DNA of 64,000 nt, taken from IMG/VR virus record IMGVR_UViG_3300032562_000004, positions 1 through 64,000 of that record; one strand, 5' to 3'. The notes under the pieces are model-generated. The model had not been told where the DNA came from, made no database searches, and saw only the letters and a list, made by a program, of their open reading frames with translations. Shown here piece by piece: positions 27,767-45,524 of the stretch (positions are counted from its first letter, which is position 1; every line of letters begins with the position of its first letter). A program made the position numbers and the translations under genes.

Positions 27767-28111
27767 TTACGATGGTTTGGCCAAAGATACTGGCGTTGCT
27801 TCTGGTGTTACTACAATCTGACTAGACTGTGTAACTGCTAAATCTGCATGTTTCTTTGCTTCGTCTGTTAAATCGGCAACATCTTTTGCTGCTTTTGCGG
27901 CCGCAGCGATTGCTGCATCACTTGCTTTTTGTGATAATTCTGCTGCTTGATGAATTGCTAAGGCTAATTCTGCTTTTAGTGTATCAACTTTTGCATTTGC
28001 TTTGGCTGCTTCGGCTTTTGCTGCAGTAAACACTTGATGTAAATCACCTTCAATAATACCTTCAATTTTTTCAACGGTTTCTTCTACCGTAAACAATTTC
28101 AAAATACTCAT
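27767..28111 (-). CDS. Ala-rich hypothetical protein
   Basis: 114-aa ORF with GGAG RBS. Confidence 0.7.
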   Translation of the reverse strand: MSILKLFTVEETVEKIEGIIEGDLHQVFTAAKAEAAKANAKVDTLKAELALAIHQAAELSQKASDAAIAAAAKAAKDVADLTDEAKKHADLAVTQSSQIVVTPEATPVSLAKPS

Positions 28112-29297: not shown

Positions 29298-29597
29298 TTA
29301 AATATTTGGAGGCTTTCTATGACTCATACCCATCATCACAGGATTGTGTGCCTTCTTCCTCTTTCTTAAATCAACACCAGGTTCACCACCTTTGCCACCA
29401 GAACCAGCGATTGCACCACCGCCAACCACATTAGTTGGACCCGCAGACATTGCGCCACCACCCATACCATCTTCTTTTACACAAGAATCTTTTGAATATT
29501 CTTTTGTGCCAACGGCAGTATATCCAGTCCTGCAGGCTTTCTTTAAATCGCCTGTGGGTTTCTTAACTGCTTCTGAAAATTGTTTAAATGTTTTCAT
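29298..29597 (-). CDS. small internal head protein
   Basis: MKTFKQFSEA resembles the T4 capsid-targeting sequence; Gly-rich. Confidence 0.65.
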   Translation of the reverse strand: MKTFKQFSEAVKKPTGDLKKACRTGYTAVGTKEYSKDSCVKEDGMGGGAMSAGPTNVVGGGAIAGSGGKGGEPGVDLRKRKKAHNPVMMGMSHRKPPNI

Positions 29598-30004: not shown

Positions 30005-30036
30005 AAAAAACGGAGACAGCCTAGGCCATCTCCGTT
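30005..30036 (-). terminator. rho-independent terminator
   Basis: AACGGAGA/TCTCCGTT stem followed by a T-tract on the minus strand. Confidence 0.75.
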
Positions 30037-30045
30037 AATTAAGCA

Positions 30046-30675
30046 TTAAATACCAGCGAAATATGTGCCAGAGTTACTTGTGTTACCGGACAATGTGTTA
30101 GCTGCAGTTGGATTAGCAAGAGCAACCAAAACTTCATTTTGAACACGACCAGCACGACCGCCAGTAAATGTTCTTGTACGAACCCAACCGGCATGTGGAA
30201 CAGAACCTATATTAAACTGGTTTGTACCATTGGCTACACCAGCATATACTGCATTGGCCAAACGAGTTGGAGTCACCAATACTGTATCATTGTTATATGT
30301 GGTATCATAAGTTTTGTTTGTATTGTAGGTGATAGCGGTATCGAATGTAGCAACTGCACCAGCGGGTGTAGTATTAAAGGAACCATTTGTCAATACAACG
30401 TTGTTACCACTAACAGAAGCAACTTGTGTGTTAGAAGCAAAGAATCCTGGATATCCGTTACCTGCTGTTCCAGTAACAAAATACACATATTGTCCTGCTG
30501 TAATACCTACGTTGGCAGCACTATTTGGTCCACCATCATAAACTGTTAAAGTAATAACGGTATTACCAATAGCAGTGGTATTGGCAGTAGTTGCGGTTAC
30601 GGTTTGTCTTACTTCACGCTCACGATCCCATTTAGGTTTCTGATTGTGATTATCTGTATTTCCCCATGTTGGCAT
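30046..30675 (-). CDS. virion structural protein
   Basis: MPTWGNTD...HAGWV...GGRAGRVQNEVLVAL; T/N/G-rich; late promoter GATAAATA at 30710-30717. Confidence 0.75.
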   Translation of the reverse strand: MPTWGNTDNHNQKPKWDREREVRQTVTATTANTTAIGNTVITLTVYDGGPNSAANVGITAGQYVYFVTGTAGNGYPGFFASNTQVASVSGNNVVLTNGSFNTTPAGAVATFDTAITYNTNKTYDTTYNNDTVLVTPTRLANAVYAGVANGTNQFNIGSVPHAGWVRTRTFTGGRAGRVQNEVLVALANPTAANTLSGNTSNSGTYFAGI

Positions 30676-30717: not shown

Positions 30718-32145
30718 TTATTTGTTTTCTACTTTTTTGTTGACCGTACCATCATCTTTTTTGTTGCCATTCAAATCTGGTCTTGATTTCATTTGTGGAT
30801 CAATCTCCACGGTATCACGCTTCTCACCAGTCATAGTAGTTCCACCAGACATTACTGCTCTGGCTTTTGGTTCACCATCAGGTAAAGCATTTGGATCTTC
30901 TTTACTTAGTTTTGGATTTTTTCCATTAGGTTTACCAGGAGATGTTTGATTCTTATCATCCTTTTCGTGGTCATACATTTCTTCTTTGACTGGTTTACAT
31001 ACAGATTTTATTGTCTTTAATGTTTTTGACATACCACGTTTTCTTGGTAGAATATCATGGGTATCATCTGTATTATTGGCACCATCAAAACAAGACTGTG
31101 TGGCTGCCTGTGGGTCACCAAAGTTATCTTCGGATACCGGTTTCATACCGACTTTACGTTGCAAGTAACCTTTGAGTCCTTTAACACGCTTCTTAGCAAT
31201 TTCATCAGATTTCTTATGTAGGTCGGCAAAACCCTTGGACATATGTTTACCATGTTCAGCAGCATCACGGTTTGCCTGAGCATTTTTAAGACTGGCTGTA
31301 GATTTATCTTTATAAGAAGCTAGTGTAGATTTTGAGATTTCATCAATCTGTTCAACTTCTTCTTTGGCTAATTGTTTCTTTTTTAACTCAATTTGACCCA
31401 TATGTTGAATTGGTTTTTTCTGTTTTGGCATACGTTTAGACCAATCGTATTTTGCAGCTTTCTTGGCCAATTCATTTTCTTCTTTGTTCAAATGTTTCTG
31501 TAAACGGTCAATAGCGGAAGTCATGCCTTCACCAGTCTTAGATTGTTTCTTTTGAATCTCATCATGTTTCTTGGCACGTTCTGCTGCATCTTGACGGAAC
31601 TTATCTAAAGCAATAGGTTTCTTAACCTCTTCAGGAAAGATTTCTCGGTTTTTGGCTTTGTCGTGAGCAATTTTACTCTGTCTAACATGAGTTGGTGTAG
31701 TACCAGGCATTGGAGTTTTACTCAATGTTTTACTAACAGTTTGTTCTGGTTTTGCATCTTCTTGTATATGATGCTGTTTCCAAATCAAAAATTGCTTAGA
31801 TTTGGAATGAGAAATCTTAACATCTTTAGTAGCAAACTTAGGATTGATGCCATGTGCTGACAGATAACGATCCAAAAGAGCATCTTCACTTACATATTCA
31901 ACTTCCTCAAACTTGTGATCCATGCGCCATTTCTTGAATGTGTTGGATTTAGCATGAGAAATTTTTGTAGCTTTAGATACAAAGTTAGGATTGATACCTT
32001 TGGCTTTTAAATATTGAGATAAAGAACCATCTTCAGCAACTTGATTTGTGGCTGAATACTGACCTAACTGGCCAGGGTTTACATAATTTGTGCCTCTGGC
32101 CGGTTCAGGATTCTGTTTAACTACATCCTTTAATTTCTTTGCCAT
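30718..32145 (-). CDS. internal head polyprotein-like protein
   Basis: Lys-rich; repeated (I/V)xE sites; internal 49-aa duplication. Confidence 0.7.
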   Translation of the reverse strand: MAKKLKDVVKQNPEPARGTNYVNPGQLGQYSATNQVAEDGSLSQYLKAKGINPNFVSKATKISHAKSNTFKKWRMDHKFEEVEYVSEDALLDRYLSAHGINPKFATKDVKISHSKSKQFLIWKQHHIQEDAKPEQTVSKTLSKTPMPGTTPTHVRQSKIAHDKAKNREIFPEEVKKPIALDKFRQDAAERAKKHDEIQKKQSKTGEGMTSAIDRLQKHLNKEENELAKKAAKYDWSKRMPKQKKPIQHMGQIELKKKQLAKEEVEQIDEISKSTLASYKDKSTASLKNAQANRDAAEHGKHMSKGFADLHKKSDEIAKKRVKGLKGYLQRKVGMKPVSEDNFGDPQAATQSCFDGANNTDDTHDILPRKRGMSKTLKTIKSVCKPVKEEMYDHEKDDKNQTSPGKPNGKNPKLSKEDPNALPDGEPKARAVMSGGTTMTGEKRDTVEIDPQMKSRPDLNGNKKDDGTVNKKVENK

Positions 32146-32154
32146 ATTATTCTC

Positions 32155-33537
32155 TTAGTTAGAAATTTTGCCCATCATGGTTTCATTCTTCAACTTTTTG
32201 AAAGCGGAACGAGCCAAATCTTTAGCACGGGACATTGGTGTATGTTTAGCACCAGATTTGTCTGTTACAGTAGCAGGAGATTTCTTCCATGGTGTTTCTT
32301 TATGCCATGAACGCTCGTCAGCTTCTTCATTCTTTTTACCATAATAAGCACCTAAAGCCATTTTCTTACGTTCAGCTTTAGATTTACCAGCAAACTTAGG
32401 ATTTTTAGAATGTATGAAATCATGAATCCAATCACCAGCATCAGCATCTTTAGAAAGAACTTCGTTAATCATTGCATCAAGTTCAACATCAGTTGCTGAT
32501 TCCATTTTAAGATTTGGAAGATTAACATGGGGTTCTTTTGCTTTGATAGACTTACGAGCAGTAGTTTCTTCAGCATCTTTTACGGCAGGAGCTTTCATCT
32601 CACCATCAGTTTTCAACTGTAATTTATAAGATTTAAATTCATTTGCATTTCCACCTTTTACACGACCACGAATCATATCTGTGGTAACTTCATTTGGTTG
32701 TGCTGCTGGTGTAGTAACTTCTGATTCAGATAATTCAACTCCTTCTTTTAATGTGGACAAATGTTTATCCAAACTAGAAAAATTACTTGTGCTATCACCA
32801 TGAGCCTTAGATGATTTTGAACCTGCAGGATAGTGGTGCCATTCACCATAACGGTTAATAGAAACTTCACCTTTGGTTGGATGTTTCATTCCTGCACCAT
32901 AAGTGGTTCTTTTAAATTCCATACCATGATTTTTAGCAATAGTATCAAGGTTATCTTCATTCAATTCGACTTCTTCATTGCGTGCTTTAGCAAGATTCTC
33001 TGGATGTGAAATTGTATCTTTCTTAGGACCTTTAACATCAGTCATGGTCAAAGGTTTTTCACCTTTTGCTTTACGGAGAAAAGCAGGAACATCGGACTTA
33101 CGAACTTCTTCACCCATGTTATTGTCGGTGAAAGTCTCTTGTGGACCACTACCCTTGTTTTCTTTAATCTTTGCTTTTGCTTTTTCTTTCCACTTATGTG
33201 CCAAAGTCATTTCTTCTGCATGGTGCATACTTTTCTCATGACCTTTTACTTCTTTTTTAGCAATATTCTTTGCTTCAGGTTCAGTAACACATGAACCATC
33301 TTCTTCCTTCATTTCTTTAGCTTTAGGACCTTTGAGTTTATCCACATCATGTGATGTTTGGTCTTTATGTGCCTTAGCAGAATTACCATAACGGTGACCA
33401 AGTACCTTTGTACCTGTAGGAGTAGCAATCTTGGTAGATTTCTTTTCAGGTTCTAACAATAATTTTTTATCTTCTTCAGCAATAACACTATTAACAGCAT
33501 CAATCATGGATTGGGTAATTTTACTTTTTGTGAACAT
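32155..33537 (-). CDS. internal head polyprotein-like protein
   Basis: K/E-rich; EEVELNE, EGVELSE; FIHSKNPKFAGKSK motif. Confidence 0.7.
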   Translation of the reverse strand: MFTKSKITQSMIDAVNSVIAEEDKKLLLEPEKKSTKIATPTGTKVLGHRYGNSAKAHKDQTSHDVDKLKGPKAKEMKEEDGSCVTEPEAKNIAKKEVKGHEKSMHHAEEMTLAHKWKEKAKAKIKENKGSGPQETFTDNNMGEEVRKSDVPAFLRKAKGEKPLTMTDVKGPKKDTISHPENLAKARNEEVELNEDNLDTIAKNHGMEFKRTTYGAGMKHPTKGEVSINRYGEWHHYPAGSKSSKAHGDSTSNFSSLDKHLSTLKEGVELSESEVTTPAAQPNEVTTDMIRGRVKGGNANEFKSYKLQLKTDGEMKAPAVKDAEETTARKSIKAKEPHVNLPNLKMESATDVELDAMINEVLSKDADAGDWIHDFIHSKNPKFAGKSKAERKKMALGAYYGKKNEEADERSWHKETPWKKSPATVTDKSGAKHTPMSRAKDLARSAFKKLKNETMMGKISN

Positions 33538-33549
33538 TTTTAGTCTCCG

Positions 33550-35442
33550 TTATTTGTTCTTTTTCTTCTTTTTAACTATTTCAATACCAATATTTCTGTT
33601 GGGGTCTTTATAGGTATCCATGCCCTCTTTGTTGTCGGCACCACCTAGTGTACCACCTAGACCGGATTCAACATCATTTTGAAAGCCGTTATATTCTTTA
33701 ATGGTCTTTCTAAATTTCTTAAATTCTTTCTTTGGAGCAGTATAAGCACTATCTCCTAATGGATTTGGTGTGATACCTGCCGGCATTGCTGTGCTAGCAG
33801 GATTTGCGTTACTATATTCTTCACCTTCACTATATGTCTGATTGCCTAATCCAGCACCGCCAGTTAAACCACTACCGTTTGTTCTTGTATTCCAAGTATT
33901 GCCTAGGCCGTCAGGACGACCAAGAGCTGATTCTTTACCAGACTTGTCGATACCACGTTTCTTTAGTTTGATTTTGTCTTTGTCTTGCTGGAAGTTGCTT
34001 TCTTTGGCTTTGTTGTAGACTTTCGTGATTGGCTGGCTTTCTTCGTAGGCTGCGTGCCACGCACCGCCGGAGTGGCCTTTGTTGAAGTTGTCTTTTCTGG
34101 CGCCCGTGTTGCCTTTAACTTGGTCTTGTCCAGGGGGAACAATGGATCCTTGGTTGTCGGGTTTGATGTCGGCTGGACCTTTTGCTCTTGGACTGGAGTA
34201 ATTGGTTTTAACTTTAAGAAATCGATTATTCGTTTTAACATTATTTTCTTCCTCAATTTTAAATTTACGATTCAGCCAATCTTCAGCCGTTTCGTTTACG
34301 GTATTTGAATCAAGAAAAACTTTAGTGTTTTCATATACTTCATGAATATCATATTCTTTAGTACGGATATCACCCGTATTATCGAAAACAATAAAATTTT
34401 TAAATGATTCGGTGAAATATTTAGTATTTCTCTGTGATTTAGACCATTTGTCCTGTCTGACGGATTCTACCATCATTCTGGACAACAGAGAATTACGCTC
34501 TTTACTTACTTCATCGGTGGTATTCACAAAAATCATCATAGTATCATATCCAAGACTTTCCAATTCTTCTTTGATATGTGAAATTCTATCTTTATCATCA
34601 GCTGGACCATTAATAATCAATGGACCACGGTTACGAATAGCTTCTCTACGGAAATCATTGGTTTTTTCAGATAGTTTTTGTTTATCACCCAAATACTCTT
34701 GTGCTTGAATAAAGTTTAATTCTACAATCTTGGATTCAGCAATAGCTTCACGAATAATAATATCTTTACCTGAACCTGGACCACCAGTTACAAAGATTGC
34801 TTTGAATTGCCCGTGGTTATATGATTCGTGTAATCCCATACCTTTGCGAGTATCATTCATCAACTCTTTAGCGTGTGTATCGGATACATGAGCAGGAACA
34901 CCTTTACGAAACTCATCAAAGTTTTTATTCTTTGCGTGTTCTCTCATCTTGGTGCCAGATACACCTTCGGATCCCTCAGCATCAGGATCACGGTGGCCAG
35001 CGGAATGTACTGTTATCTTTTTAAAATGATAAGGTACTTTACCTTCTTTATTGGGTTTACCGTTATATTTGTTTAATGAATCTTTAAATTCTTTGACACG
35101 GTCCAAACCAACAACAACATGAAGGTGAGTTACACCTTGTTTATGTAACTTTTCAGCGTGACTAAAAATGGAAGGATGTTCTTTTGAAGATTTCTCGATA
35201 TTAGTATCCGGAGAATACCGCTTCAGAGCTTTAACCTTCTGTGCGCCGGATAAAGGATTCTTCTTAGCATCTTGTGTATGAGATACAATAACATGATGTG
35301 AACCACCAACATCCTTAGCAATTTCTTTAACCTTATCGATTACTTTTAAATGTCCTGTGGTTGGAGGATTCATCCGACCATAAGTCATCACGGCATGTTT
35401 ACCTGTATCTTTTTCTTCAGATAATTCTAAGAATGATTTCAT
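33550..35442 (-). CDS. HxGH nucleotidyltransferase fused to P-loop kinase domain
   Basis: TYGRMNPPTTGH; VVGLDRV; SGTKMR; AIFVTGGPGSGKD; MKSFLELSEE N-terminus. Confidence 0.8.
   Translation of the reverse strand: MKSFLELSEEKDTGKHAVMTYGRMNPPTTGHLKVIDKVKEIAKDVGGSHHVIVSHTQDAKKNPLSGAQKVKALKRYSPDTNIEKSSKEHPSIFSHAEKLHKQGVTHLHVVVGLDRVKEFKDSLNKYNGKPNKEGKVPYHFKKITVHSAGHRDPDAEGSEGVSGTKMREHAKNKNFDEFRKGVPAHVSDTHAKELMNDTRKGMGLHESYNHGQFKAIFVTGGPGSGKDIIIREAIAESKIVELNFIQAQEYLGDKQKLSEKTNDFRREAIRNRGPLIINGPADDKDRISHIKEELESLGYDTMMIFVNTTDEVSKERNSLLSRMMVESVRQDKWSKSQRNTKYFTESFKNFIVFDNTGDIRTKEYDIHEVYENTKVFLDSNTVNETAEDWLNRKFKIEEENNVKTNNRFLKVKTNYSSPRAKGPADIKPDNQGSIVPPGQDQVKGNTGARKDNFNKGHSGGAWHAAYEESQPITKVYNKAKESNFQQDKDKIKLKKRGIDKSGKESALGRPDGLGNTWNTRTNGSGLTGGAGLGNQTYSEGEEYSNANPASTAMPAGITPNPLGDSAYTAPKKEFKKFRKTIKEYNGFQNDVESGLGGTLGGADNKEGMDTYKDPNRNIGIEIVKKKKKNK
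33963..34241 (-). CDS. putative overprinted basic protein in an alternative frame
   Basis: GAGGA RBS 8 nt before ATG; MLKRIIDFLKLKP...TKKASQSRKSTTKPKK; locally GC-rich. Confidence 0.45.
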   Translation of the reverse strand: MLKRIIDFLKLKPITPVQEQKVQPTSNPTTKDPLFPLDKTKLKATRAPEKTTSTKATPAVRGTQPTKKASQSRKSTTKPKKATSSKTKTKSN

Positions 35443-36563
35443 GCAGGTTTATGTTCCATATGTTCTGATTTATCGGTATAATGTATATCTTTATGATCTT
35501 CACTTGGAAGTGTTACCGTTCCTTTGGGAGATTTATTTGCCGGACGGCCACCAGCAGAAATTGATATTCTAGCAACCGCCATTTTCTTTTTTGTTACTTT
35601 ATGGTGTCCATGTATAGTAACAGAATTTCCTTTAGCTGTAGGATCCACATGTAAATTTTCAAAATGATGTAAATATTCAGCAACATGGCCATGAGCATCA
35701 TATGTGTGATGGCCACGTTCCTGGCCTGCTTTAGAATGACTTTTTGGATAAGTTATTTGTCTAGAAACGATATGTTTCAAATGTGTTTCTGGAGATACAG
35801 CATCCGATACGGTTTTGTGTAATTCATTATGTGATTTTTGTGAAAGACCATGTCTTATATCATGAGCAATACTAGTATTCATTTCAAAAGAAGATTTTTT
35901 AATATTGGATGCTTTTTCTTGATCTTCTTTATTTGAAGAATCTCTTAATGCTTTATATTTGTCATGTGAATCTTCATGCAAATTTGTCTTTATTGTTTCT
36001 CCGTGTTTTTCTGTGTGGTGACTCAAACTTTTACCACTCATTTTACTTAACGAATCTAAACCCAAGTTTGAATAATTTACACTACCACTACCCGTTTTAA
36101 CAGAAATTGCTACTTTATTTTCATTTCTATTTTTTCTTTTATGTGATTTGCTTGTTGTAACAATTAAATCAGCTTTTGAATTTTTATCAGCTACACCGGT
36201 CTCACTTTGATGGTCTGATGGTTGTGAGGTCCATACAGTTTTTTTAACTTTACCGTGGCCATGTTTCTCTAAATGAGATTCTATATTTTTAGCGGCTCTG
36301 GCAGCATTTTTTTGAGAAGTTTTGTGTCCTTCAGCCTTCTCATAATTTTCTCCATGAGCTTTCTTTGAAAGCTTATCATGTGTTTGTTCTGGAGTTTTAC
36401 CTTCAGCACGATAACTCTCCATATGTTTTCCACCATTAAGATGTTGGCCAACTTGTAATTCTCTTAATTTTCCTACTGTGTCGGCACCTTCACCCGTGGA
36501 AGCTTCTAATAATAATTCTTCTTCTAGATATTCTTCATTTAGCCAAGTTTTAAATCTTTTCAT
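35439..36563 (-). CDS. His-rich PD-(D/E)xK-like protein
   Basis: KADLIV...AISVK motif; MKRFKTWLNEE N-terminus. Confidence 0.65.
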   Translation of the reverse strand: MKRFKTWLNEEYLEEELLLEASTGEGADTVGKLRELQVGQHLNGGKHMESYRAEGKTPEQTHDKLSKKAHGENYEKAEGHKTSQKNAARAAKNIESHLEKHGHGKVKKTVWTSQPSDHQSETGVADKNSKADLIVTTSKSHKRKNRNENKVAISVKTGSGSVNYSNLGLDSLSKMSGKSLSHHTEKHGETIKTNLHEDSHDKYKALRDSSNKEDQEKASNIKKSSFEMNTSIAHDIRHGLSQKSHNELHKTVSDAVSPETHLKHIVSRQITYPKSHSKAGQERGHHTYDAHGHVAEYLHHFENLHVDPTAKGNSVTIHGHHKVTKKKMAVARISISAGGRPANKSPKGTVTLPSEDHKDIHYTDKSEHMEHKPA

Positions 36564-37765
36564 TTTCTTACCTTTAACAAATTTTGTTTAGCAAATTCAG
36601 CACGATTAACCAATTTAGTAGGTTCTTCTTTACCACCTTCTGGTTTATGGTTTACCACAAAACCTTCAGGTTTGGATTTCTTACCATCAATGTGATGTTG
36701 ATAGTGTCCTTCGTGTGTTTCTAAAGACTTCACCAAAGTATTTTTGGCTTGGTGTAAATGATGGTGCATTGAGAATAGGTTACCATAGTGTTCTTTGTGT
36801 TTTTCAACATGAGCAATTTGGTGTTTACCTTCGTTACGTTTTTCTTCTTTACTTTTATCTGTTTTGACCTTGGCAGCCATCTTTTCATGTTCACCGTGTA
36901 AATGTTCTTTAAAACCTTTAACACTTGGAACTTCATCGTGTCTTACTGTCTTGTTTATGTATGTGGCAAGGTGGCCATGTTCTCCACTATGTTTTGGATG
37001 AACGGCATTATACATCTTATGACCATGAGTATCATGAATATCTTTAGCGGCATTCATGTGTTTATGGAACTCTTTTTCACGTTCAGCAGTATGTTTTACC
37101 TTGCTGGTATCGTGTTCAGCGCCATGAATATGGACATCTGGATGTTCTTTGAATTTACTTACATCAACATGGGGTGAAGCGTGTTTCATTTCATGGTCGT
37201 ATTCGTGGTGTACTACCACACCAACTTTAGACTTTTTAATCTTTTCTGCTTCTTTACCTTTGGCAGTATAGGTAATAGTGTTTGGAGTAAAAGAAACATC
37301 ACCTTTAGCCTCAACGATATAACTTTCGTGTAGGTGTTTGGTATCAGCATGGTGCATTAAGTCACCTTGAAATACGCCATGTTTAGGTGTTACTTTAGGT
37401 AGATGTTTGAGTGCGTGTTTAAGTGTGTGTGCTAGACCTGGAGCGTGGCCATGATTTCTATCGATGTCCGCTTCAGTATGATTGATTTTTGGATTCTTAT
37501 TGAAGGCAGATTTGGTTGCCACAAAGAATTTACCATTCTTAGGATGATGACCAAAAACAATCGATGGTGAACCGTCATATTTCATGGTCAGATTTGTATT
37601 TTTATGACCACCAGTCATATGTGCATGAGCTTTCATCAAAGCTGCATGAGCATGTTCAAAACCTTCGTGACCATGCATCAACGGTCTATCTTCAGCATGA
37701 TGAATATGTTTCAACTCCGAACTCTGTTCGGCCTCTTCTTTTAAGAATGATTTAAATGATAACAT
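36560..37765 (-). CDS. His-rich ligase-like nucleotidyltransferase (KxDG)
   Basis: TMKYDGSPSIVFG, FFVATKSAFNK, QGDLM, PEGFV, KLVNRAEF; MLSFKSFLKEE N-terminus. Confidence 0.75.
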   Translation of the reverse strand: MLSFKSFLKEEAEQSSELKHIHHAEDRPLMHGHEGFEHAHAALMKAHAHMTGGHKNTNLTMKYDGSPSIVFGHHPKNGKFFVATKSAFNKNPKINHTEADIDRNHGHAPGLAHTLKHALKHLPKVTPKHGVFQGDLMHHADTKHLHESYIVEAKGDVSFTPNTITYTAKGKEAEKIKKSKVGVVVHHEYDHEMKHASPHVDVSKFKEHPDVHIHGAEHDTSKVKHTAEREKEFHKHMNAAKDIHDTHGHKMYNAVHPKHSGEHGHLATYINKTVRHDEVPSVKGFKEHLHGEHEKMAAKVKTDKSKEEKRNEGKHQIAHVEKHKEHYGNLFSMHHHLHQAKNTLVKSLETHEGHYQHHIDGKKSKPEGFVVNHKPEGGKEEPTKLVNRAEFAKQNLLKVRK

Positions 37766-37810
37766 GAATTTCTTTCTAGACTTGCAACACACTTTGGTTG
37801 CCGGACACCT

Positions 37811-37818
37811 TATTTATA
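37811..37818 (-). promoter_or_regulatory. T4-type late promoter
   Basis: exact TATAAATA 46 nt upstream of the ATG; GCAAC-N8-GTTGC hairpin in the leader. Confidence 0.8.
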
Positions 37819-37888
37819 CAACTTTTAAGTTAATATGGTGAAACTGTGGAAAGATTGGCTTAGATACATAGTGCCAAAATTGTTGGAT

Positions 37889-38608
37889 TTAAAACTTGGT
37901 TCCTTCAAAATCCATCCAATAAGTGGCCATTTTACCTTTACCTTCAAGTAAGTAAAAAGGTAGAGTATGGATTAAACCCCGACTGGAGTTATAGTATATC
38001 AGGTCTTTAGGTCCACGGTCAAGCGAAAATGCAAAATGTGTTGTTCCTGTATCACCCCCGATAAAGATTTCGGCAGTCTGGATATGGTTGATATTTTCCA
38101 TGAAGCCAAAACTATATTTGAAATGTATTGGAATCAATTCTTCATGGCCAAATGGATATTTACCAACACAGATAAGTTTTTCGTAATCATCATATTCTGG
38201 CGCACTATACTTATTACAAATGGTTTCAAGTAATTTTGGTGGCCAATTTCTGTAGGTATTATAAGGCGCATCAAACAATGGAAAAATAACAATCTTCTTT
38301 TCCATTTCTAATTTGTTTGGAACTGTTACTAAATCTCCAGAGATATCTCTAAAGTCCCAAACATTCACTCTACGCCATGGCAGAGTTTCTTGTCCTTCGA
38401 AATCAGAAAAGTAATTAGTTACCAATAAAAGAAATGTATAAAATTCCTGTACATATTTCTCAGAACTTATTGCTTCCGGCTTTAAATGAAATCGAATCTG
38501 TGGATTATTATTAGTTTTTCTAATATGTTCCAATACATTACAGACACCAAGTAAATCACCATTGCGTAATGGTCCACCAAAAGTACCAGGTTCAATATTA
38601 ATAATCAA
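37889..38608 (-). CDS. glycosyltransferase, GT9-like
   Basis: IFIGGDTGTTHFA resembles the GT9 xxIGxDSGxxHLA motif. Confidence 0.6.
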   Translation of the reverse strand: MIINIEPGTFGGPLRNGDLLGVCNVLEHIRKTNNNPQIRFHLKPEAISSEKYVQEFYTFLLLVTNYFSDFEGQETLPWRRVNVWDFRDISGDLVTVPNKLEMEKKIVIFPLFDAPYNTYRNWPPKLLETICNKYSAPEYDDYEKLICVGKYPFGHEELIPIHFKYSFGFMENINHIQTAEIFIGGDTGTTHFAFSLDRGPKDLIYYNSSRGLIHTLPFYLLEGKGKMATYWMDFEGTKF

Positions 38609-39348
38609 AGTAGTGCCTCCAAATCTTTAGCGTGAACTAGTTTTGCTTTACGGTTCAAATAGAAATGTTTTTCAAATACTTTATTGATATCCTTACCATC
38701 GTCCCAAGATACATTATCACCTACACGGAACTCAGGTTTCCAATCTTCTGCTTTCCATACACAATAAAGTGGAACATTACAGAGGTCTGCCAACATACCG
38801 ACACCAGTAAAATTGGTGATAAATGGTTTCTTTAGATTCTTAATGATGTAAGCATTGGTCAACATATCATTATCAAAATTAATAAACTCACAATCTTTTA
38901 AATAAGATAATACATGAGTTTCTCTACGATTATCAATCTCACCAACCGCCCATCTATCACCAACATAATAGGCATCTTTAATTTCAATATCCATCTCTGG
39001 TGTTAATACAACAAATTTATCATTTACTTCAAACATCAAATCATATTTGTCCCTTAACCAATTCTCATATCGACAGGTTTCAATCGGTCTATCAGGATCA
39101 CCTTTAGTTTCACGGCTTGGCCACGAACTTAATTGAATCATATCGCCATAAGGAATGATATCATCATCAAATTCAACATCAGAAAACAAATCTTGGTACA
39201 TTAAGAATTCTTTAATGCCTTTAAATTTCTTCGTTGAACCTTTGAGTATCAAAGAATATTTACCATATGATTTAGTAAGACCTGACAACACAGGCATTGT
39301 GTTTAAAAAATCACCAAGGTTAGCAGTTCCAGTTACATAAATTTTCAT
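38605..39348 (-). CDS. glycosyltransferase-like (GT9-type N-terminus)
   Basis: NLGDFLNTMPVL motif. Confidence 0.5.
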   Translation of the reverse strand: MKIYVTGTANLGDFLNTMPVLSGLTKSYGKYSLILKGSTKKFKGIKEFLMYQDLFSDVEFDDDIIPYGDMIQLSSWPSRETKGDPDRPIETCRYENWLRDKYDLMFEVNDKFVVLTPEMDIEIKDAYYVGDRWAVGEIDNRRETHVLSYLKDCEFINFDNDMLTNAYIIKNLKKPFITNFTGVGMLADLCNVPLYCVWKAEDWKPEFRVGDNVSWDDGKDINKVFEKHFYLNRKAKLVHAKDLEALL

Positions 39349-40139
39349 TTACTAAATTCCTTAAAAGCAACAAACCAGTCCTGTTCGGAAACTGGATGTA
39401 ATTCAAACAATTCGGGTTTCAACAAATAGGACATTAACAATAAAGTTTGGTCATCATCAACCAATCCATTCTTGACCAATTCATCCATACTATGAGCAAC
39501 CAACTTCTGTAATGTTGGCCAATTCTCTTTGCTAGCAACAATCATTGGTCCTGTAATATGTACATCGTTGTTGGCAATAACATCTTGAATGATAGTGCCT
39601 TCTTGCCAATCTTTAATATTGAATAAATGAATTTTATCTTTATCAAATGGATAACTCCAAACTTGAACATCATTTAAGGTTACTTCATCACGACAATAAC
39701 CAAAATCGAGCCACGCAATTAAATCATTATTAATTGTGTTTCGTCTAATAGCCTCAACAACAAAACTAGATTTTAGTGCGTTTACGATAACATAATCAGC
39801 ATTCCAATATTCTGGATTGCGTACTTGCATGGGATTTATTTTTGCTTGATATTCTGGATCCTGTTGAACTTTGGAAACCATTTCACGGAAAACACTAAAA
39901 GATTCTTTAAAGTCCATCGTGATAATATCTGTTGGTCTATCTTCTCTTAACTCTTTAATTTTATCGACCATATCGGCTGATGTAAATATGGTCATTTCAT
40001 TTTCGAGTTTGGCCATGTGACCAAATCTTTGCAAATAAGTTTCTGTTGTTCGTTGTAGATAGTGTGGAAGATTTTTATCTGGTGTCCATTCACCACGACC
40101 AATATCAAAGAAGGCCGTTACGATGCTAATTTCACTCAT
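39345..40139 (-). CDS. HtrL/YibB (WlaTC)-family glycosyltransferase-like protein
   Basis: SIVTAFFDIGRGEW, K..FV..AI, AWLDFG, VDDDQ. Confidence 0.75.
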   Translation of the reverse strand: MSEISIVTAFFDIGRGEWTPDKNLPHYLQRTTETYLQRFGHMAKLENEMTIFTSADMVDKIKELREDRPTDIITMDFKESFSVFREMVSKVQQDPEYQAKINPMQVRNPEYWNADYVIVNALKSSFVVEAIRRNTINNDLIAWLDFGYCRDEVTLNDVQVWSYPFDKDKIHLFNIKDWQEGTIIQDVIANNDVHITGPMIVASKENWPTLQKLVAHSMDELVKNGLVDDDQTLLLMSYLLKPELFELHPVSEQDWFVAFKEFSK

Positions 40140-40864
40140 ACCCAATAATACCTTTTATAATTATTAACAATTTCAATGTGGATTGGCTGACTCATAACAA
40201 AATCATCATAATCATATCCATCATTCTTATGGTGGTGTGTATCCGTCAAATAAGGATTAACACTATAATCTTTTCCACACAACATATAATAAACTACCAT
40301 ATAACAATCCATGAATCCTAATGGCTGATAGTGAATCTGAAACCAATCATGATTCTTTTTAAACCATTCGGTTACTTTATCATAGTTCTCTAAGAATGTT
40401 GATACTTTAAATATTGAACCTCCACCACAACCATATTGATTTGTGATTGGTTTCTTTCCAGAGAAATCTGTTATACTACCTATGATATCATCAGGAATTA
40501 TATTACCAATTTTGATATCATGTCCTGCCATTTCCCAAGTAGAATCAACTGTGATTGGTTTTTTAATCCAAACATCGTCTTCCATCATCATTATATGTGA
40601 TGTTGGTGCTTGTTGGCAAGCAGCTCTAAATCTATCCAACCATTGTAATGTTTTGTCGGCATCATAACTTGGATAACCTAATTTAGAAACTGAACGAATG
40701 TAATCACAGTTATATTTTTCAGCAATATCAGATAAATCATCTGCTGCATCCGACAATAACATATAATAGGAATCAGGATGGTGTTTACGGACTTGTTCTA
40801 CAACTTTTTCAGTAGAAACTTTTTTGCCTGCTGAGGCAAGATGGCAAAAAGAAATATCAGGCAT
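40136..40864 (-). CDS. putative glycosyltransferase (GT-A)
   Basis: IMMMEDDVW DxD-like motif; GCGGGSIF. Confidence 0.6.
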   Translation of the reverse strand: MPDISFCHLASAGKKVSTEKVVEQVRKHHPDSYYMLLSDAADDLSDIAEKYNCDYIRSVSKLGYPSYDADKTLQWLDRFRAACQQAPTSHIMMMEDDVWIKKPITVDSTWEMAGHDIKIGNIIPDDIIGSITDFSGKKPITNQYGCGGGSIFKVSTFLENYDKVTEWFKKNHDWFQIHYQPLGFMDCYMVVYYMLCGKDYSVNPYLTDTHHHKNDGYDYDDFVMSQPIHIEIVNNYKRYYWV

Positions 40865-41423
40865 ATTTTACCCAAAAGATAATACTATCGGTCATATTTG
40901 AAGGTTCTCTGAGGTCAACAACACCACAAACCATATTAGGTGGAACTAAAGTTCTATAATCTTCTGTCCATTCCATTTGACCAATATCTTCAATAATAAA
41001 CATACCACCACGGTTTAACTTTGGTAAATATAAACTAAGTGATTGTAAATGACTTTTTTTGGTGTGAGGACCATCATCAATGATAATATCAAAATTAGGC
41101 AAAGAATCGGCAAACTCTTTTTTATATCCGTCAGCGTAAATTATTTTAACTCGTGGATAAGGTTCACAATTTGTTTTTGCACCAAAATCATATGGGTCTA
41201 CACCATAGAGGTCAGCATTAGGAAAGTAATGATGCCAAAGTGCCATACTTCCGCCACGATGAATTCCTAATTCTAATAAACGAATATTTTTATCTTGATA
41301 TGGCAAAAGAGCTTCATCATAGAAACCACTACAATATTTGTGGTTAAATTCTTTATCTGTACCAAATTCATAATGTGTATCATTACGAATATTATACTTA
41401 ATCATAATATCAACTAAACTCAT
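40857..41423 (-). CDS. class I SAM-dependent methyltransferase
   Basis: LLELGIHRGGS; YGVD; DIIIDDGPH; GGMFIIED. Confidence 0.85.
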   Translation of the reverse strand: MSLVDIMIKYNIRNDTHYEFGTDKEFNHKYCSGFYDEALLPYQDKNIRLLELGIHRGGSMALWHHYFPNADLYGVDPYDFGAKTNCEPYPRVKIIYADGYKKEFADSLPNFDIIIDDGPHTKKSHLQSLSLYLPKLNRGGMFIIEDIGQMEWTEDYRTLVPPNMVCGVVDLREPSNMTDSIIFWVKYA

Positions 41424-42436
41424 TACATTAACCTATCTTTCCATGTTTTAGGTGTTTTATCTGATACAATTTCCAATGGATATGTATAGTCGAAAGGTTT
41501 AGGTCCTTTCTTCTTAACATACGCCACGGTTTCTTGAATGGCTTTTCTTAAATCTGTTTTAGTTTCATAATTTAATAATTTACGAGCTTTATCTGCTGAA
41601 CAAGAAGCGTGTTTAACTTCTCTTGGTCGGTCTGGCATATGAATTGGTGGCCATGTGTTATCTTTTCTCATATCACACTCTTTATTCACCAAAGCAGCCA
41701 ACTCAGCAATAGTAATTGTACCTTCATCAGGTCCAATGTTAATAATCTCACTCTTAATTTTTGGATCTAATGCCATTTTTTCTAAACAATTAATACAGTC
41801 ACTAACATAAGAAAAACAACGAGTTTGTTTACCATCGCCATAAATGATTGCAGGTTTACTTTGCAAATTACGATTAATCATAATACTCATAACATTACGG
41901 AACGGATCATCATAACGCTGACGAGGACCAACAATATTATGTGGCACAGCAATATTCCATTCCATACCATGAGTTTCACAAAGAGCTTTTAATACTTCTT
42001 CACCAGCAACTTTAGCTATGCCATACGGATCTACAGGTCTAGGAGTCATTTTTTCATGGAATGGTGCCTTTTGGTCACCATATCGTGCCATAGATGTGCA
42101 ATAAACAAATCTTTTTACTTTATTTTGGATTGCTGCAGAAATAGTAGATACACTTGCTTCAAAAATATTTCGTGTAATGAAACTAGGAGAGAATACAGAC
42201 AGTCCTTCATGTGCCGTTGCGGCAGTATGAATAACGATATCACAACCTTCCATAGCATAGGTCATCTTTTCATTATCACAACAATCAATGATAAAAAGTT
42301 TTGCTTTTTTTGGAACATTATCACGATAACCACCAATCAAGTTATCATTACCAATAACTTCATGTCCAAGTTCAATCATTCTATCAGCAAGATGGCTACC
42401 TAGAAATCCTGCTAGTCCAGTAATAAAAATTTTCAT
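41423..42436 (-). CDS. NAD-dependent epimerase/dehydratase
   Basis: TGLAGFLG; TSMARYG; YGIAK; HNIVGP. Confidence 0.9.
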   Translation of the reverse strand: MKIFITGLAGFLGSHLADRMIELGHEVIGNDNLIGGYRDNVPKKAKLFIIDCCDNEKMTYAMEGCDIVIHTAATAHEGLSVFSPSFITRNIFEASVSTISAAIQNKVKRFVYCTSMARYGDQKAPFHEKMTPRPVDPYGIAKVAGEEVLKALCETHGMEWNIAVPHNIVGPRQRYDDPFRNVMSIMINRNLQSKPAIIYGDGKQTRCFSYVSDCINCLEKMALDPKIKSEIINIGPDEGTITIAELAALVNKECDMRKDNTWPPIHMPDRPREVKHASCSADKARKLLNYETKTDLRKAIQETVAYVKKKGPKPFDYTYPLEIVSDKTPKTWKDRLM

Positions 42437-42963
42437 TATACTCTCTTAATCAAAGTCATTCCATTGCAATTTGTTCTTCGTTCAACTAATTGCCATTGTG
42501 GATTAGTATCCAAGAATTCTTGAATCGCTTTCCATACACCTCCTTCACCACCTTGGCCACGTGCACCAAATAATTCTGTATCATGGAATAATATATATTT
42601 GCTCACCTTATCAGCATGTAAATCTAATTCACCTTTTACTTGTTCATATGAATGATAACTATCCACAAGCATAATATCTGTTGGTGCAATTTCAGTTTCT
42701 AATGTAGAACAAACATGAAGTGTAACATTTCTACCAGCGGCTCTCGCTTCGTTAAAGAATTGAGTAGTAACCTCATAAGGTGAAATTTCGTAACTATGAA
42801 GTTCTACATCTTGCCTTAAAAATCCTCTGGTACTTTGTGCATATCCAACACCAAGTTCAGTCGCATGTTTACACTCAGAAGTTAGTTCTGAAATCCATGG
42901 TAAATGCTCGTGCATATCGGTTGGTCTGGCACAAGCATCTAAGTATTCTTGTTCAAAGTTCAT
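42436..42963 (-). CDS. SAM-dependent methyltransferase
   Basis: TELGV; DIMLVDSYH; YILFHDT. Confidence 0.75.
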   Translation of the reverse strand: MNFEQEYLDACARPTDMHEHLPWISELTSECKHATELGVGYAQSTRGFLRQDVELHSYEISPYEVTTQFFNEARAAGRNVTLHVCSTLETEIAPTDIMLVDSYHSYEQVKGELDLHADKVSKYILFHDTELFGARGQGGEGGVWKAIQEFLDTNPQWQLVERRTNCNGMTLIKRV

Positions 42964-42964
42964 T

Positions 42965-43801
42965 TTATGTACTGTATATAAATAATTGTGATTCATCTTC
43001 TTGTCCATATTTTTCTTGGACAAACTTCTTTAAAACTGGTACCCTATCGTATTGGTGTACAATTGGAAAAACTTTATCGGTATAATCTTTTAAAATACCA
43101 TCTTCAAAAAATGGTTCAACGATAAGTAGATTTGGCCTAAACTGTTCAATCTTGGATGGATCCATGATTGTTCCTAACTCAGCAGCCCATTGTGTTGTTT
43201 TAGTTACAACATCTTTAAACGGTTGTGTGTTGATTAGAACATTGAATACTGCTTGGTCTACGATAGGAATTGGTCGGTTGATTCCGTTTGTGAAAATATG
43301 AAACACCATATCTTTTACATATTCTGATTTACCACCAAAGGTTCCTACATTAAAGATTTCATTGTTTTTAAATTTATCATACACATATGGACCATAAGCT
43401 TGATATAAATTCTCATTACCCCAAGGTTCGTCTTTATATTTCAAACCTTCAGATGCAATAACCAATTTACGGTCAACTAAGAATTTAAATGGATCTGTTT
43501 GAAAATAAACATCTTTAACATCAGTAGTAACAACATATTGATAATCAAACCAATGATTTTCTAGATATTCATAGATTGATAAAAATCGTAACACATGGAT
43601 CGGTATGTTTTGTACTTGTAACATGGGAACAACAACTACTCCTTGTTCTACCAACCAATCTAGTGTTTCATCTGAAGCGTTACCATAAACCAAAACAACA
43701 TCATTATCACCAGCAACTTCTTTTGCTGAGATAACCCAAGGTTTTAATTGGTTAATGTTATAGTTTGTGAACCCGCCGATGATGAGATTTTTTTGCGCCA
43801 T
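42965..43801 (-). CDS. putative glycosyltransferase
   Basis: VVTTDVKDVYFQTDPF; FNVGT; DQAVFN; IVHQYDR. Confidence 0.7.
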   Translation of the reverse strand: MAQKNLIIGGFTNYNINQLKPWVISAKEVAGDNDVVLVYGNASDETLDWLVEQGVVVVPMLQVQNIPIHVLRFLSIYEYLENHWFDYQYVVTTDVKDVYFQTDPFKFLVDRKLVIASEGLKYKDEPWGNENLYQAYGPYVYDKFKNNEIFNVGTFGGKSEYVKDMVFHIFTNGINRPIPIVDQAVFNVLINTQPFKDVVTKTTQWAAELGTIMDPSKIEQFRPNLLIVEPFFEDGILKDYTDKVFPIVHQYDRVPVLKKFVQEKYGQEDESQLFIYST

Positions 43802-44505
43802 GGGAATTCTCCATTATATTTTTGATTCATTACATTATTTCCATTGATAAAGAAATCGGCAGTAACCGAACCTTTACCGCCATCAACACGATAGTTTACG
43901 GTATACTCACCTGTACAATCGAATTTCTTAAAGTGCTGAGCAACGACACTCAGGAACACTCTATCTTGTCCCCAACCACCATGCCAACAACTTGCTATTT
44001 TAACAGCAATCTCTGTCTTGAGGCAATATGAATTGGTATCCACATGGTTCACTCCATGGTAAGTTTGCCATTTACCTAAAGATTCACAATCATCATGGCA
44101 AACAAATGTACCATCCTTATTGTATACGTCACGCAAAGAATAACACCAATCAAGATTCTTTTCTTTGATTGTGTTGATACAAGTTTCAACGTGATTTGGT
44201 TTTAACCAATTATCTTGGTCGAGATATAATACATATTCTGTATTAATTAAATGAGTGAAAGCGGCATAGACACGGTGTCCGTAGAATCCATTGGCGCCCA
44301 CATTGGTTGGTAAACTACATAGAGTAATGTTCTTGTATTTCGGATGCTTTTCAAATTGTTTAATATGGTTCTTGATAGCGTAAACAAATTCAGGACCATC
44401 ACAAACAATATAACATTTAGTTTCGTATGTTTGGTCTAATACCGATTTAATAGCTTCATGTACTGGTGCAGCGACAGTAGTTGGTATAATCACAGTTGCG
44501 GACAT
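43744..44505 (-). CDS. glycosyltransferase family 2
   Basis: TVIIPT; IVCDG; LYLDQDNW; VDTNSY; DRVF. Confidence 0.85.
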   Translation of the reverse strand: MSATVIIPTTVAAPVHEAIKSVLDQTYETKCYIVCDGPEFVYAIKNHIKQFEKHPKYKNITLCSLPTNVGANGFYGHRVYAAFTHLINTEYVLYLDQDNWLKPNHVETCINTIKEKNLDWCYSLRDVYNKDGTFVCHDDCESLGKWQTYHGVNHVDTNSYCLKTEIAVKIASCWHGGWGQDRVFLSVVAQHFKKFDCTGEYTVNYRVDGGKGSVTADFFINGNNVMNQKYNGEFPWRKKISSSAGSQTITLTN

Positions 44506-44507
44506 AA

Positions 44508-44786
44508 TTAATCTCTAGTCAGTTTTAAAATCTTTTCTATTTGTGCTTCGATGGCAGGTTTACGGTTAGGCCAATATATGTATTCTTTATCTCCAGTTGA
44601 ATGGAGTTTAGTTAAGAATGGAACAATCATCTTTTCTAATTCTTGTAATCGTGTCTTATAATCATCCGCTGTTGCAGCAGTTTTATTAATTACTGAATTA
44701 TATTCTTCTTCAGAAACAGCAGAGAAACCAAAATCATTATCAGTTTCATATTGCTTAGCTAGTTTATCAAAATCAATTAATGCCAT
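44508..44786 (-). CDS. conserved hypothetical protein
   Basis: DFGFSAVSEEE...YIYWPNR motif. Confidence 0.75.
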   Translation of the reverse strand: MALIDFDKLAKQYETDNDFGFSAVSEEEYNSVINKTAATADDYKTRLQELEKMIVPFLTKLHSTGDKEYIYWPNRKPAIEAQIEKILKLTRD

Positions 44787-44794
44787 ATTCTATC

Positions 44795-45499
44795 CTATTT
44801 TGAATTTGCTCTTGATGAAAGAGCTTTTAAATAATCCTTATCATCCAAATCACTATCAGACTTTTTTAACGAATTTGGAATTGCTTGTATAGCGGTTGTA
44901 AATCTATAATTATAAATTGGAATACTTCCACCTCGTTTGATTCGAATTCTCAATTTCAATTTTAAATTGAATTCTGGTAATCCTAATTTTGCAGGATCTT
45001 TACCCATGTAATAAAATCCACTTTTACCAATTTGAATATAATAAGTATCTTTACTATTGTAATACTTAGATACCGCATTACTTGGTATATCTATAAACTC
45101 ATCTTTAAAAGTTTCATAATCATATTCAACATCTTGTTTTTTGTATAGTTTATATGGTACTGTATATTTTCTTGGTGCACCTTTTGGGCCCCATTTCTTA
45201 TTTACTATTTTCACAACACCAATAGATTCTAAAAATTGCCTCATCTGTTCCGCAGCAACTGTTTTTGCTCCACCTAAACTCCATAAACCACTATCAACAT
45301 TATAATCTAAACTGCCTTGGCCAAAATCAACTTTAGTATCTAATTTAATTTCTATCTTATAATCTCGGCCTTGATATCGAATTTTGGCATCAGGTGCATT
45401 AGAATCTGCACCAGCAGCAACAAATCCTGGAGTTAAAAGTTTTGCCTTTTTTAGATTGGCGTTTACTTTAGATTCGTAAACAAAGCCTTTGTTAGACAT
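44795..45499 (-). CDS. PD-(D/E)xK-like nuclease-fold protein
   Basis: APDAKIRYQGRDYKIEIK; late promoter GATAAATA at 45522-45529. Confidence 0.6.
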   Translation of the reverse strand: MSNKGFVYESKVNANLKKAKLLTPGFVAAGADSNAPDAKIRYQGRDYKIEIKLDTKVDFGQGSLDYNVDSGLWSLGGAKTVAAEQMRQFLESIGVVKIVNKKWGPKGAPRKYTVPYKLYKKQDVEYDYETFKDEFIDIPSNAVSKYYNSKDTYYIQIGKSGFYYMGKDPAKLGLPEFNLKLKLRIRIKRGGSIPIYNYRFTTAIQAIPNSLKKSDSDLDDKDYLKALSSRANSK

Positions 45500-45524
45500 A
45501 ATATATCCATTTAAAAGGAACTAT

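Follow-up and report, generated by a model that had tools for sequence, protein, structure and literature searches.

A late gene module of a T4-like lake phage encodes enzyme-like proteins with candidate capsid-targeting N-termini

The internal proteins IPI, IPII and IPIII of bacteriophage T4 and its T-even relatives carry a capsid-targeting sequence, reportedly described by Mullaney and Black in 1996 and by Repoila et al. in 1994. It has so far been known mainly on small anti-restriction proteins. The T4 signal reads MKTYQEFIAE (bioRxiv 10.1101/2021.01.19.427310), and mutagenesis of T4 IPIII assigned residues 4 and 7 to targeting and residues 8 and 10 to processing (reviewed in PMC9026906). 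In T-even internal-protein loci, the members share the targeting sequence alone (PMC3012670). Here we describe three adjacent minus-strand genes, p1, p2 and p3, of the virus record IMGVR_UViG_3300032562_000004, whose enzyme-like products begin with a peptide resembling this signal. The stretch analysed (the window) spans the initial 64 kb of the 235.8-kb record, which is the genome of a T4-like lake phage.

The p1 gene (positions 36560–37765) encodes 401 amino acids (aa) starting MLSFKSFLKEE, p2 (35439–36563) encodes 374 aa starting MKRFKTWLNEE, and p3 (33550–35442) encodes 630 aa starting MKSFLELSEE. These N-termini had been picked out in an earlier note on this DNA together with a fourth, MKTFKQFSEA, which heads the small minus-strand gene p8; all four are present on the minus strand. 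The start of p8 is close to T4 MKTYQEFIAE. The candidate capsid-targeting sequences comprise residues 1–10 of each protein and are encoded at 37736–37765 (p1, MLSFKSFLKE, with predicted cleavage after Glu10), 36534–36563 (p2, MKRFKTWLNE) and 35413–35442 (p3, MKSFLELSEE, conserved in homologues that are separate open reading frames (ORFs)), all on the minus strand. They share the pattern M-x-x-F-x-x-[F/W/L]-[L/S]-x-E, which MKTYQEFIAE fits in register.

The N-terminal similarity is far from chance. Among the 2781 ATG-started ORFs of the 236-kb genome, 19 match the pattern. Spurious matches, to short or internal ORFs, make up most of these; the real genes matched are the adjacent p1, p2 and p3 and one ORF at 27767–28111. 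In a first set of related loci, the pattern was found in 189 ORFs on the operon strand and in none on the other, and in an enlarged set made up of all the fetched public viral-contig loci it was found in 318 and six, respectively. To avoid circularity, conservation was measured on p1 homologues that had been picked by homology alone, which gave 85 unique N-termini. After Met1, conservation is highest at position 4 (Phe, 3.4 bits), followed by positions 10 (Glu, 3.3 bits), 8 (Leu, 3.15 bits) and 7 (Phe or Tyr, 3.1 bits), exactly the four positions that are critical in T4 IPIII. At the two targeting positions, p1 and p2 have F4 with an aromatic residue (F/Y/W) at position 7, and p3 has F4 with L7. 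The [L/I]-x-E signature at positions 8–10 reads L-K-E in p1 and L-N-E in p2; in p3 it reads S-E-E here and L/V/I-x-E in most homologues.

The peptide is retained down to about 37% protein identity and is followed by a linker of variable length and composition and then by the conserved core. At fixed residues the codons differ among homologues: position 8 is written with all six Leu codons, positions 3 and 6 with both Ser codon families and position 7 with both Phe codons; this synonymous turnover indicates selection on the peptide at the protein level. Peptide and linker lie outside the predicted folds: the predicted local-distance difference test (pLDDT) score is below 50 for p1 residues 1–16 and p2 residues 1–22 in AlphaFold models.

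The distribution of the peptide across related phages resembles that of a modular tag. In eleven relatives, p1 and the nucleotidyltransferase of p3 are fused, and the junction is a short linker without the peptide; where the two are split into separate genes, each product has its own peptide. The peptide thus marks true N-termini only. Around ten unrelated protein clusters in related phages bear it, among them a 234-aa ADP-ribosyltransferase in one relative (L056:819–1523; PF03496, E-value 4e-12) with STS and E-x-E motifs. By its family and motifs, this protein can be likened to T4 Alt, the head-carried, gp21-processed ADP-ribosyltransferase that is injected and acts before phage gene expression; no Alt-like ADP-ribosyltransferase was found in the genome of the present phage.

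The position between p1 and p3 is hypervariable. This slot is empty in about 27 loci and elsewhere holds at least six different genes, most of them tagged. In four related loci (L044, L045, L046 and L050) it is occupied by a tagged 208-aa HAD phosphatase that matches phrog_415, ‘polynucleotide kinase’ (E-value 6e-11), and has DMDEV and DD motifs. The occupant in the present phage is p2, and 40 of 97 representatives of the p2 family (clustered at no more than 50% identity) are tagged, while others begin directly at the core domain. The earlier description of p2 as an operon member holds in that p2 is a tagged gene between p1 and p3; it appears as an optional occupant of a hypervariable slot and not as part of the core. 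The polymorphic slot parallels the T-even internal-protein loci (PMC3012670).

Two further conserved N-termini were observed in these loci. Homologues of p4, the gene downstream of p3, have a different and longer one, MF[AT]KSK[IV][ST]QSMIDAV..[IL].E; in p4 itself it ends in VIAE (residues 18–21) followed by another Glu, and gene 069 of phage DLP_6 has a similar start. This N-terminus may, by its sequence, represent a second type of propeptide, and p4 is a possible further internal protein. A third N-terminus, M-x-S-[IL]-Q-x-x-I-[WY]-L-[ED]-R-A-G-L, replaces the usual peptide in some slot and p2-family proteins, namely a 466-aa slot family (L021, L023 and L025) and the p2-family members P0164 and P0165.

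The genome also encodes the machinery on which T4 capsid targeting depends. Profile matches identify gp55, gp20, gp21, gp22 and gp23; the gp21 prohead protease matches PF03420 with 111 bits, and the T4 head machinery is further represented by matches to phrog_207 (protease), phrog_237 (scaffold), phrog_138 (major head protein) and phrog_213 (portal). The late sigma factor gp55 matches phrog_234 with an E-value of 4e-62. The products of p1–p5 and p8 are strongly basic, with isoelectric points (pI) of 9.2–9.9 and 12.5–16.6% Lys compared with 7.5% Lys genome-wide. Like the T4 and T-even internal proteins, the module combines a ten-residue peptide in register, with the critical positions 4, 7, 8 and 10 and Glu at the predicted gp21 site, with basic cargo, predicted late expression and a polymorphic locus whose occupants share the peptide alone. 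It differs in its cargo, which in T4 consists of small non-enzymatic anti-restriction proteins and here of predicted enzymes of 374–630 aa. The evidence supports the view, already taken in the earlier note, that the N-termini of p1–p3 are T4-type capsid-targeting peptides on late enzyme-like genes: the register and the four positions agree, the cargo is unrelated, fusion junctions have no tag, gp21, gp22 and gp55 are all encoded, and a tagged homologue of p3, described below, was detected in virions.

The module stands behind a late promoter box, TATAAATA (37811–37818, minus strand), which is an exact T4-type match 46 nucleotides (nt) upstream of the p1 ATG. The octamer count in the AT-rich window is at chance level (8 found, 9.9 expected); we rejected the bare count as evidence and counted positional conservation alone. 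In 89 of 148 related loci, the p1 ATG is preceded by TATAAATA at a distance of 51–55 nt, counted from the first base of the octamer; ahead of p2–p8 the octamer is found in almost none. This conservation, together with the gp55 gene, bears out the late promoter that had been noted. Because the promoter position is kept before p1 and almost never before the downstream genes, the transcription unit is better described as p1–p6 than as the three-gene operon first proposed; the three genes are indeed adjacent and behind an exact late promoter, and the unit probably comprises six genes and ends at a terminator-like hairpin of 12 pairs followed by a T run (30009–30036, minus strand). Contigs from a lake RNA library, 90–98% identical to the window, cover 34670–36809 and span the p1/p2 and p2/p3 junctions, which gives weak support for co-transcription of p1–p3. 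An upstream GTG start of p1 at 37792, used in a mechanical ORF list, was rejected since nearly all homologues start at the ATG at 37765. The leader between promoter and p1 ATG contains a possible small hairpin at 37784–37801 (GCAAC, an 8-nt loop and GTTGC), and this upstream GTG lies in its loop.

The p1 protein belongs to Pfam family DUF6267 (E-value 2e-92) and is very basic and His-rich. Searches for ligase sequence families (Rnl1–5 and DNA ligase models) gave no match, and NCBIfam and PDB sequence and profile searches were empty, so that DUF6267 is the only family assignment. The AlphaFold2 model (pLDDT 90.2) indicates an RNA-ligase-like covalent nucleotidyltransferase fold, split by a helical insert at about residues 227–348. 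All 50 top structural matches of this model are ligases, with 173–208 aligned residues; structural Z-scores are 9.0 for the Naegleria RNA ligase, 8.3 for the Trl1 ligase domain, 8.3 for T4 Rnl2 and 7.8 for T4 Rnl1, and Foldseek E-values are weak (0.02 or higher). Motif I reads KYDG (residues 62–65). Across 45 sequences, with identities as low as 37%, K62, D64 and G65 do not vary, and this invariance, together with the exclusively ligase matches, upholds the KxDG ligase-like nucleotidyltransferase proposed earlier. E367, G368 and K384 are also invariant; by sequence pattern alone, E367-G368 (in P-E-G-F-V) and K384 (in K-L-V-x-R) resemble motifs IV and V, and Q133-G-D135 may be a variant of motif III. 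The His content is 14.7% in p1 and 9.6% in p2, compared with 2.1% genome-wide. Among p1 homologues, the median is 13% in the lake clade and about 1% in the marine P-HM2, HTVC008M and Melnitz, so that His-richness is clade-specific and not tied to the targeting peptide.

The p3 protein consists of the candidate peptide, a TxGH/SGTxxR nucleotidyltransferase domain (about residues 17–205; 34828–35394, minus strand), a P-loop kinase domain (about residues 212–400; 34243–34809, minus strand) and a basic low-complexity tail rich in Gly, Asn and Lys. The first domain contains GRMNPPTTGH and SGTKMR motifs and the second a Walker A motif, GGPGSGKD, at residues 220–227; the fusion of a nucleotidyltransferase to a GPGSGKD P-loop kinase is thus as previously read. 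The HxGH motif given for it reads TTGH in p3 itself (residues 28–31) and HKGH, TIGH or TVGH in homologues. All 26 family members match PF01467 (CTP_transf_like) in this domain, which also matches the generic NCBIfam model TIGR00125 and a PHROG cytidyltransferase family (E-value 6e-61); R23, P26, P27, G30, H31, S162 and R167 are invariant. The kinase domain matches Zeta_toxin in 25 of the 26 members and AAA_33 in eight, with AAA_19 also matched, and the Zeta/AAA_33 clan includes polynucleotide kinases. This domain architecture was seen in viruses only. A single profile, PHROG family 455, spans DUF6267 and the nucleotidyltransferase, and this, the fusions and the conserved synteny indicate that p1 and p3 are a functional pair.

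Fungal Trl1 and the T4 enzymes Pnkp and Rnl1 are the repair systems closest to this pair. The RNA-ligase fold, the P-loop kinase and, in some relatives, the HAD phosphatase have counterparts there, and the fused p1–p3 relatives recall the fusion of ligase and kinase modules in Trl1. Unlike these systems, p1 matches no Rnl sequence family and its domain is split by the helical insert of about 120 residues; no known repair system has a counterpart of the TxGH nucleotidyltransferase between ligase and kinase; and T4 Pnkp and Rnl1 are early cytoplasmic proteins and not virion cargo.

The p2 protein matched no sequence family in Pfam, PHROG or NCBIfam. PDB sequence and profile searches with p1, p2 and p3 returned chance or P-loop matches only, and the fold assignments of p1 and p2 consequently rest on the AlphaFold models. 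The AlphaFold2 model of p2 (pLDDT 90.6) has a HinP1I-type PD-(D/E)xK fold, with Z-scores of 10.0 and 8.6 for HinP1I and 212 of 247 residues covered; the next matches are HhaI (5.8) and MutH (4.2). The modelled fold agrees with the PD-(D/E)xK-like protein recognized earlier. D132 and K156 are invariant and S154 and E35 nearly so. The catalytic site of HinP1I is arranged as D ... Q-x-K; the putative counterparts in p2 would be D132 ... S154-x-K156, with an atypical Ser at the middle position. The likeness to the type IIP endonucleases HinP1I and MspI covers the whole-chain fold and, putatively, the Asp ... x-x-Lys arrangement, while p2 differs in having no detectable sequence similarity to them, no methyltransferase nearby, Ser in mid-site, and a phage context in which the family is often tagged.

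No methyltransferase adjoins p2, and no restriction-modification partner is evident. Untagged p2-family members occur in phage-like contigs, one of them with a PF05050 methyltransferase two genes away that is not evidently its partner in DNA modification. CTS-tagged staphylococcal nuclease and EcoRI (CTS, capsid-targeting sequence) have been packaged in T4 (PMC9026906), and by analogy a role of p2 as an injected nuclease is plausible in principle. When the p2-family profile was compared with the genes that precede DUF6267 in Melnitz, HTVC008M and P-HM2, nothing significant emerged; the alignments covered the N-terminal peptide and short stretches resembling catalytic motifs (E-values 0.05–0.4). 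The genes at this place in HTVC008M and P-HM2 (L002:4806–5864 and L003:4496–5986) contain short non-significant matches to catalytic stretches of p2, K-I-S-L-K-S-G and P-A-D-I-W (E-values 0.3–0.4), and in BFVD the p2 model also resembles several cyanophage proteins that are uncharacterised. The module may be partnered more widely by p2-like nucleases.

Homologues of the module are present in cultured phages. The peptide heads four consecutive genes of the Methylophilales phage Melnitz, including those for DUF6267 and the nucleotidyltransferase, and the DUF6267 gene of Stenotrophomonas phage DLP_6; HTVC008M has a degenerate peptide only. Cyanophage S-CREM2 encodes gp154, which is homologous to the p3 nucleotidyltransferase domain (31% identity, E-value 3e-24), starts MKNFSSFLTEA, followed by a linker, and is located directly behind TATAAATA. 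This protein was detected by mass spectrometry, with three peptides, in CsCl-purified virions (PMC10665884). It differs from p3 in its length of 286 aa, in having neither kinase domain nor tail and in its different genomic location, after gp55. The S-CREM2 paper does not mention the N-terminal peptide or link gp154 to capsid targeting (PMC10665884), and no paper connecting these protein families with capsid targeting was found.

We propose, from these sequence features, that p1–p3, and probably also p4, p5 and p8, are ‘ejection’ proteins which this T4-like myovirus carries inside its capsid. The module would be transcribed late from its gp55-type TATAAATA promoter, and the ten-residue peptide M-x-x-F-x-x-[F/Y/W]-[L/I]-x-E would bind the prohead scaffolding core. 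A gp21-type prohead protease would then cut after Glu10, leaving the mature basic protein free in the head, from which it would depart together with the DNA at the next infection. We hold this route of delivery, from late synthesis to co-injection, with moderate to good confidence. The core cargo would be a coupled pair, the RNA-ligase-like adenylyltransferase p1 and the TxGH nucleotidyltransferase/P-loop kinase p3, with the hypervariable slot between them holding the p2 nuclease here and, in relatives, nothing or other tagged proteins such as the Pnkp-type HAD phosphatase. On entry, before phage gene expression, the pair might heal and seal broken RNA or other nucleic-acid ends, possibly those left by host anticodon nucleases or other RNA nucleases. 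End repair, most likely of RNA, is favoured by the RNA-ligase fold of one partner, by the kinase clan that includes polynucleotide kinases and by the Pnkp-type phosphatase found between the pair in some relatives; as a specific function of the pair it is nonetheless a tentative and somewhat doubtful assignment. The explanation as a whole, in which p1–p3 are ejection proteins and nucleic-acid end repair is their most likely job, is in our judgement the best available and a reasonably probable one.

Several observations weigh against it. Packaging, cleavage, injection and all enzyme activities are what we infer for this phage, and the RNA-library contigs may derive from contaminating DNA. The homologues in Prochlorococcus phage P-HM2 have no peptide, which implies that the enzymes can work without the tag, and the authors of the S-CREM2 study caution that abundant late proteins may co-purify with virions (PMC10665884). 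The repair function gives no role to the TxGH nucleotidyltransferase, and no 3'-phosphatase or cyclic phosphodiesterase was found in the window. The Pfam matches of the p3 kinase are at clan level and near or below cut-offs, so that it is not assignable to the polynucleotide kinases; its lone PDB match is a weak one to an adenylate-kinase P-loop, and the invariant Asp that follows the Walker A Lys (GKD) is unusual. A packaged DNA nuclease would need self-protection, for which nothing was found, and a whole-genome search for a base-modification gene of the ThyA/dCMP-hydroxymethylase family revealed none. The 4-mer palindromes CGCG, ACGT, GATC and TGCA are depleted genome-wide (0.45–0.57 of Markov expectation), and among 6-mer palindromes the depletion is strongest for GGATCC, but no 4-mer palindrome is absent from the genome, and this clue to a p2 recognition site is therefore uninformative.

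The proteins might instead be late cytoplasmic enzymes that are never packaged, with the peptide serving as a docking helix or as a signal for regulated proteolysis or localisation. The tagless P-HM2 homologues fit this proposal, the splitting of a fused enzyme could select for association tags, and the virion detection of gp154 rests on three peptides and is subject to the caution just mentioned. It is harder to reconcile with the presence of the peptide on unrelated proteins, such as small basic proteins and the Alt-like ADP-ribosyltransferase encoded several kb away, or with a peptide that corresponds to the T4 capsid-targeting signal position by position and ends in the [L/I]-x-E site of gp21-type proteases. 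The tagged proteins are also strongly basic, as are T4 internal proteins, and the phage encodes the complete prohead core machinery of T4. We consider a purely cytoplasmic role unlikely. Where packaging is accepted, the pair could restore NAD+ or nucleotide pools and counter NAD-depleting defences, as suggested earlier by analogy to NadR, in which an (H/T)xGH nucleotidyltransferase likewise precedes a P-loop kinase. In this case p3 would combine an NMN adenylyltransferase with a ribosylnicotinamide or nucleotide kinase. The motifs G-R-x-x-P-x-[H/T]-x-G-H and S-x-T-x-x-R of the p3 N-terminal domain are typical of NMNAT-type enzymes, its P-loop GGPGSGK is as in nucleotide-monophosphate kinases, a weak PHROG match points to a nicotinamide-nucleotide adenylyltransferase (E-value 0.0035), one cyanophage homologue is annotated as a nicotinate-nucleotide adenylyltransferase, and an NMNAT role was proposed for S-CREM2 gp154 by its authors (PMC10665884). 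The (H/T)xGH and SxTxxR motifs are, however, superfamily-wide and not specific to NMNAT. In NCBIfam, p3 matches no NMNAT, NadD or NadR model and only the generic TIGR00125; the NadR kinase domain AAA_28 is found in none of the 26 family members, and p3 differs from NadR further in having no helix-turn-helix domain and in its long basic tail and N-terminal peptide. Nor would NAD salvage explain why p3 is obligately partnered by, and often fused to, an RNA-ligase-like protein, or why relatives have a Pnkp-type phosphatase in the slot. These comparisons do not support the NadR analogy, and NadR-like salvage, a weaker reading than end repair, is in our view improbable.

A third possibility arises from the neighbourhood of the module. 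Some dozen minus-strand genes, clustered over 8.7 kb (37889–46634), lie between the gp41 helicase gene and p1–p3; their products include a methyltransferase, a glycosyltransferase, an NDP-sugar epimerase and several proteins without a family. Since the module is directly downstream of these genes, p3 might serve them by making an NDP- or CMP-sugar for the glycosylation of host or phage structures, and sugar-activating fusions of a kinase with an HxGH nucleotidyltransferase do exist, for example RfaE. The p3 kinase is, however, a P-loop kinase and not of the sugar-kinase fold, its conserved partner is a ligase-like protein, and the late promoter stands between module and cluster. No such cluster occupies the corresponding place in HTVC008M or P-HM2, and these two phages, Melnitz and S-CREM2 all have the module without an adjoining one, so that the adjacency is specific to this phage. 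A function in sugar metabolism is accordingly very improbable.

The remaining genes of the unit and its surroundings are less readily assigned. The p4 (32155–33537, 460 aa, pI 9.2, 15.7% Lys) and p5 (30718–32145, 475 aa, pI 9.6, 16.6% Lys) products are basic, rich in Lys and Glu and in Lys, respectively, and matched no family. The p6 product (30046–30675, 209 aa) is rich in Thr, Asn and Gly and is weakly similar to the product of P-HM2 gene 169, including an identical 8-mer; p6 is syntenic with the gene for a cyanophage ‘virion structural protein’, directly upstream of a DUF7207 gene as in P-HM2 and S-CREM2. Outside the p1–p6 unit, p8 (29298–29597) encodes a small basic, Gly-rich protein of 99 aa with a pI of 9.9. 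All four genes are on the minus strand. The pattern-matching ORF at 27767–28111 lies next to the lysis genes and encodes 114 aa starting MSILKLFTVEE; it has a good ribosome-binding site and no family match. The window also contains genes for gp41 helicase, primase and NrdAB in addition to the lysis genes.

Positions 33550–37900 of the window are found almost completely in at least 19 metagenome runs on lake or fresh water, which come from several studies (sampled-word share 0.70–1.00), and the phage lineage is thus abundant and recurrent. A related strain was seen in a lake metatranscriptome. A nucleotide search against phage records gave no match, and the nearest isolates are 25–45% identical at the protein level; the phage is a member of a distant, uncultured lake clade.

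The known element of this module is delivery by a capsid-targeting sequence; what is new lies in the enzymes carried as cargo, in their spread among abundant T4-like phages of aquatic habitats and in the variable slot. If our interpretation is correct, use of the label extends well beyond the T-even phages: in T4-like phages that abound in lakes and the sea, it would load into the head large enzymes that include ligase-like proteins, nucleotidyltransferase–kinases, a restriction-like nuclease, a phosphatase and an ADP-ribosyltransferase. It would account for the unexplained ‘cytidylyltransferases’ and kinases in cyanophage virion proteomes, provide a simple sequence rule for predicting injected proteins of uncultured T4-like phages, and supply DUF6267, together with a widespread nucleotidyltransferase–kinase family restricted to viruses, with a context and an initial hypothesis of function. 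The variable locus would be a likely home of counter-defence functions. The idea is directly testable in the cultured carriers Melnitz, S-CREM2 and DLP_6. A joint reading, which we advance as a possibility rather than an expectation, is that aquatic T4-like phages use the peptide as an exchangeable address label for enzymes and that the slot is an arms-race locus; the core cargo would then be an undescribed injected machine for nucleic-acid repair or modification that acts in the first seconds of infection, and p2 would be the first natural restriction-type endonuclease delivered from a phage head.

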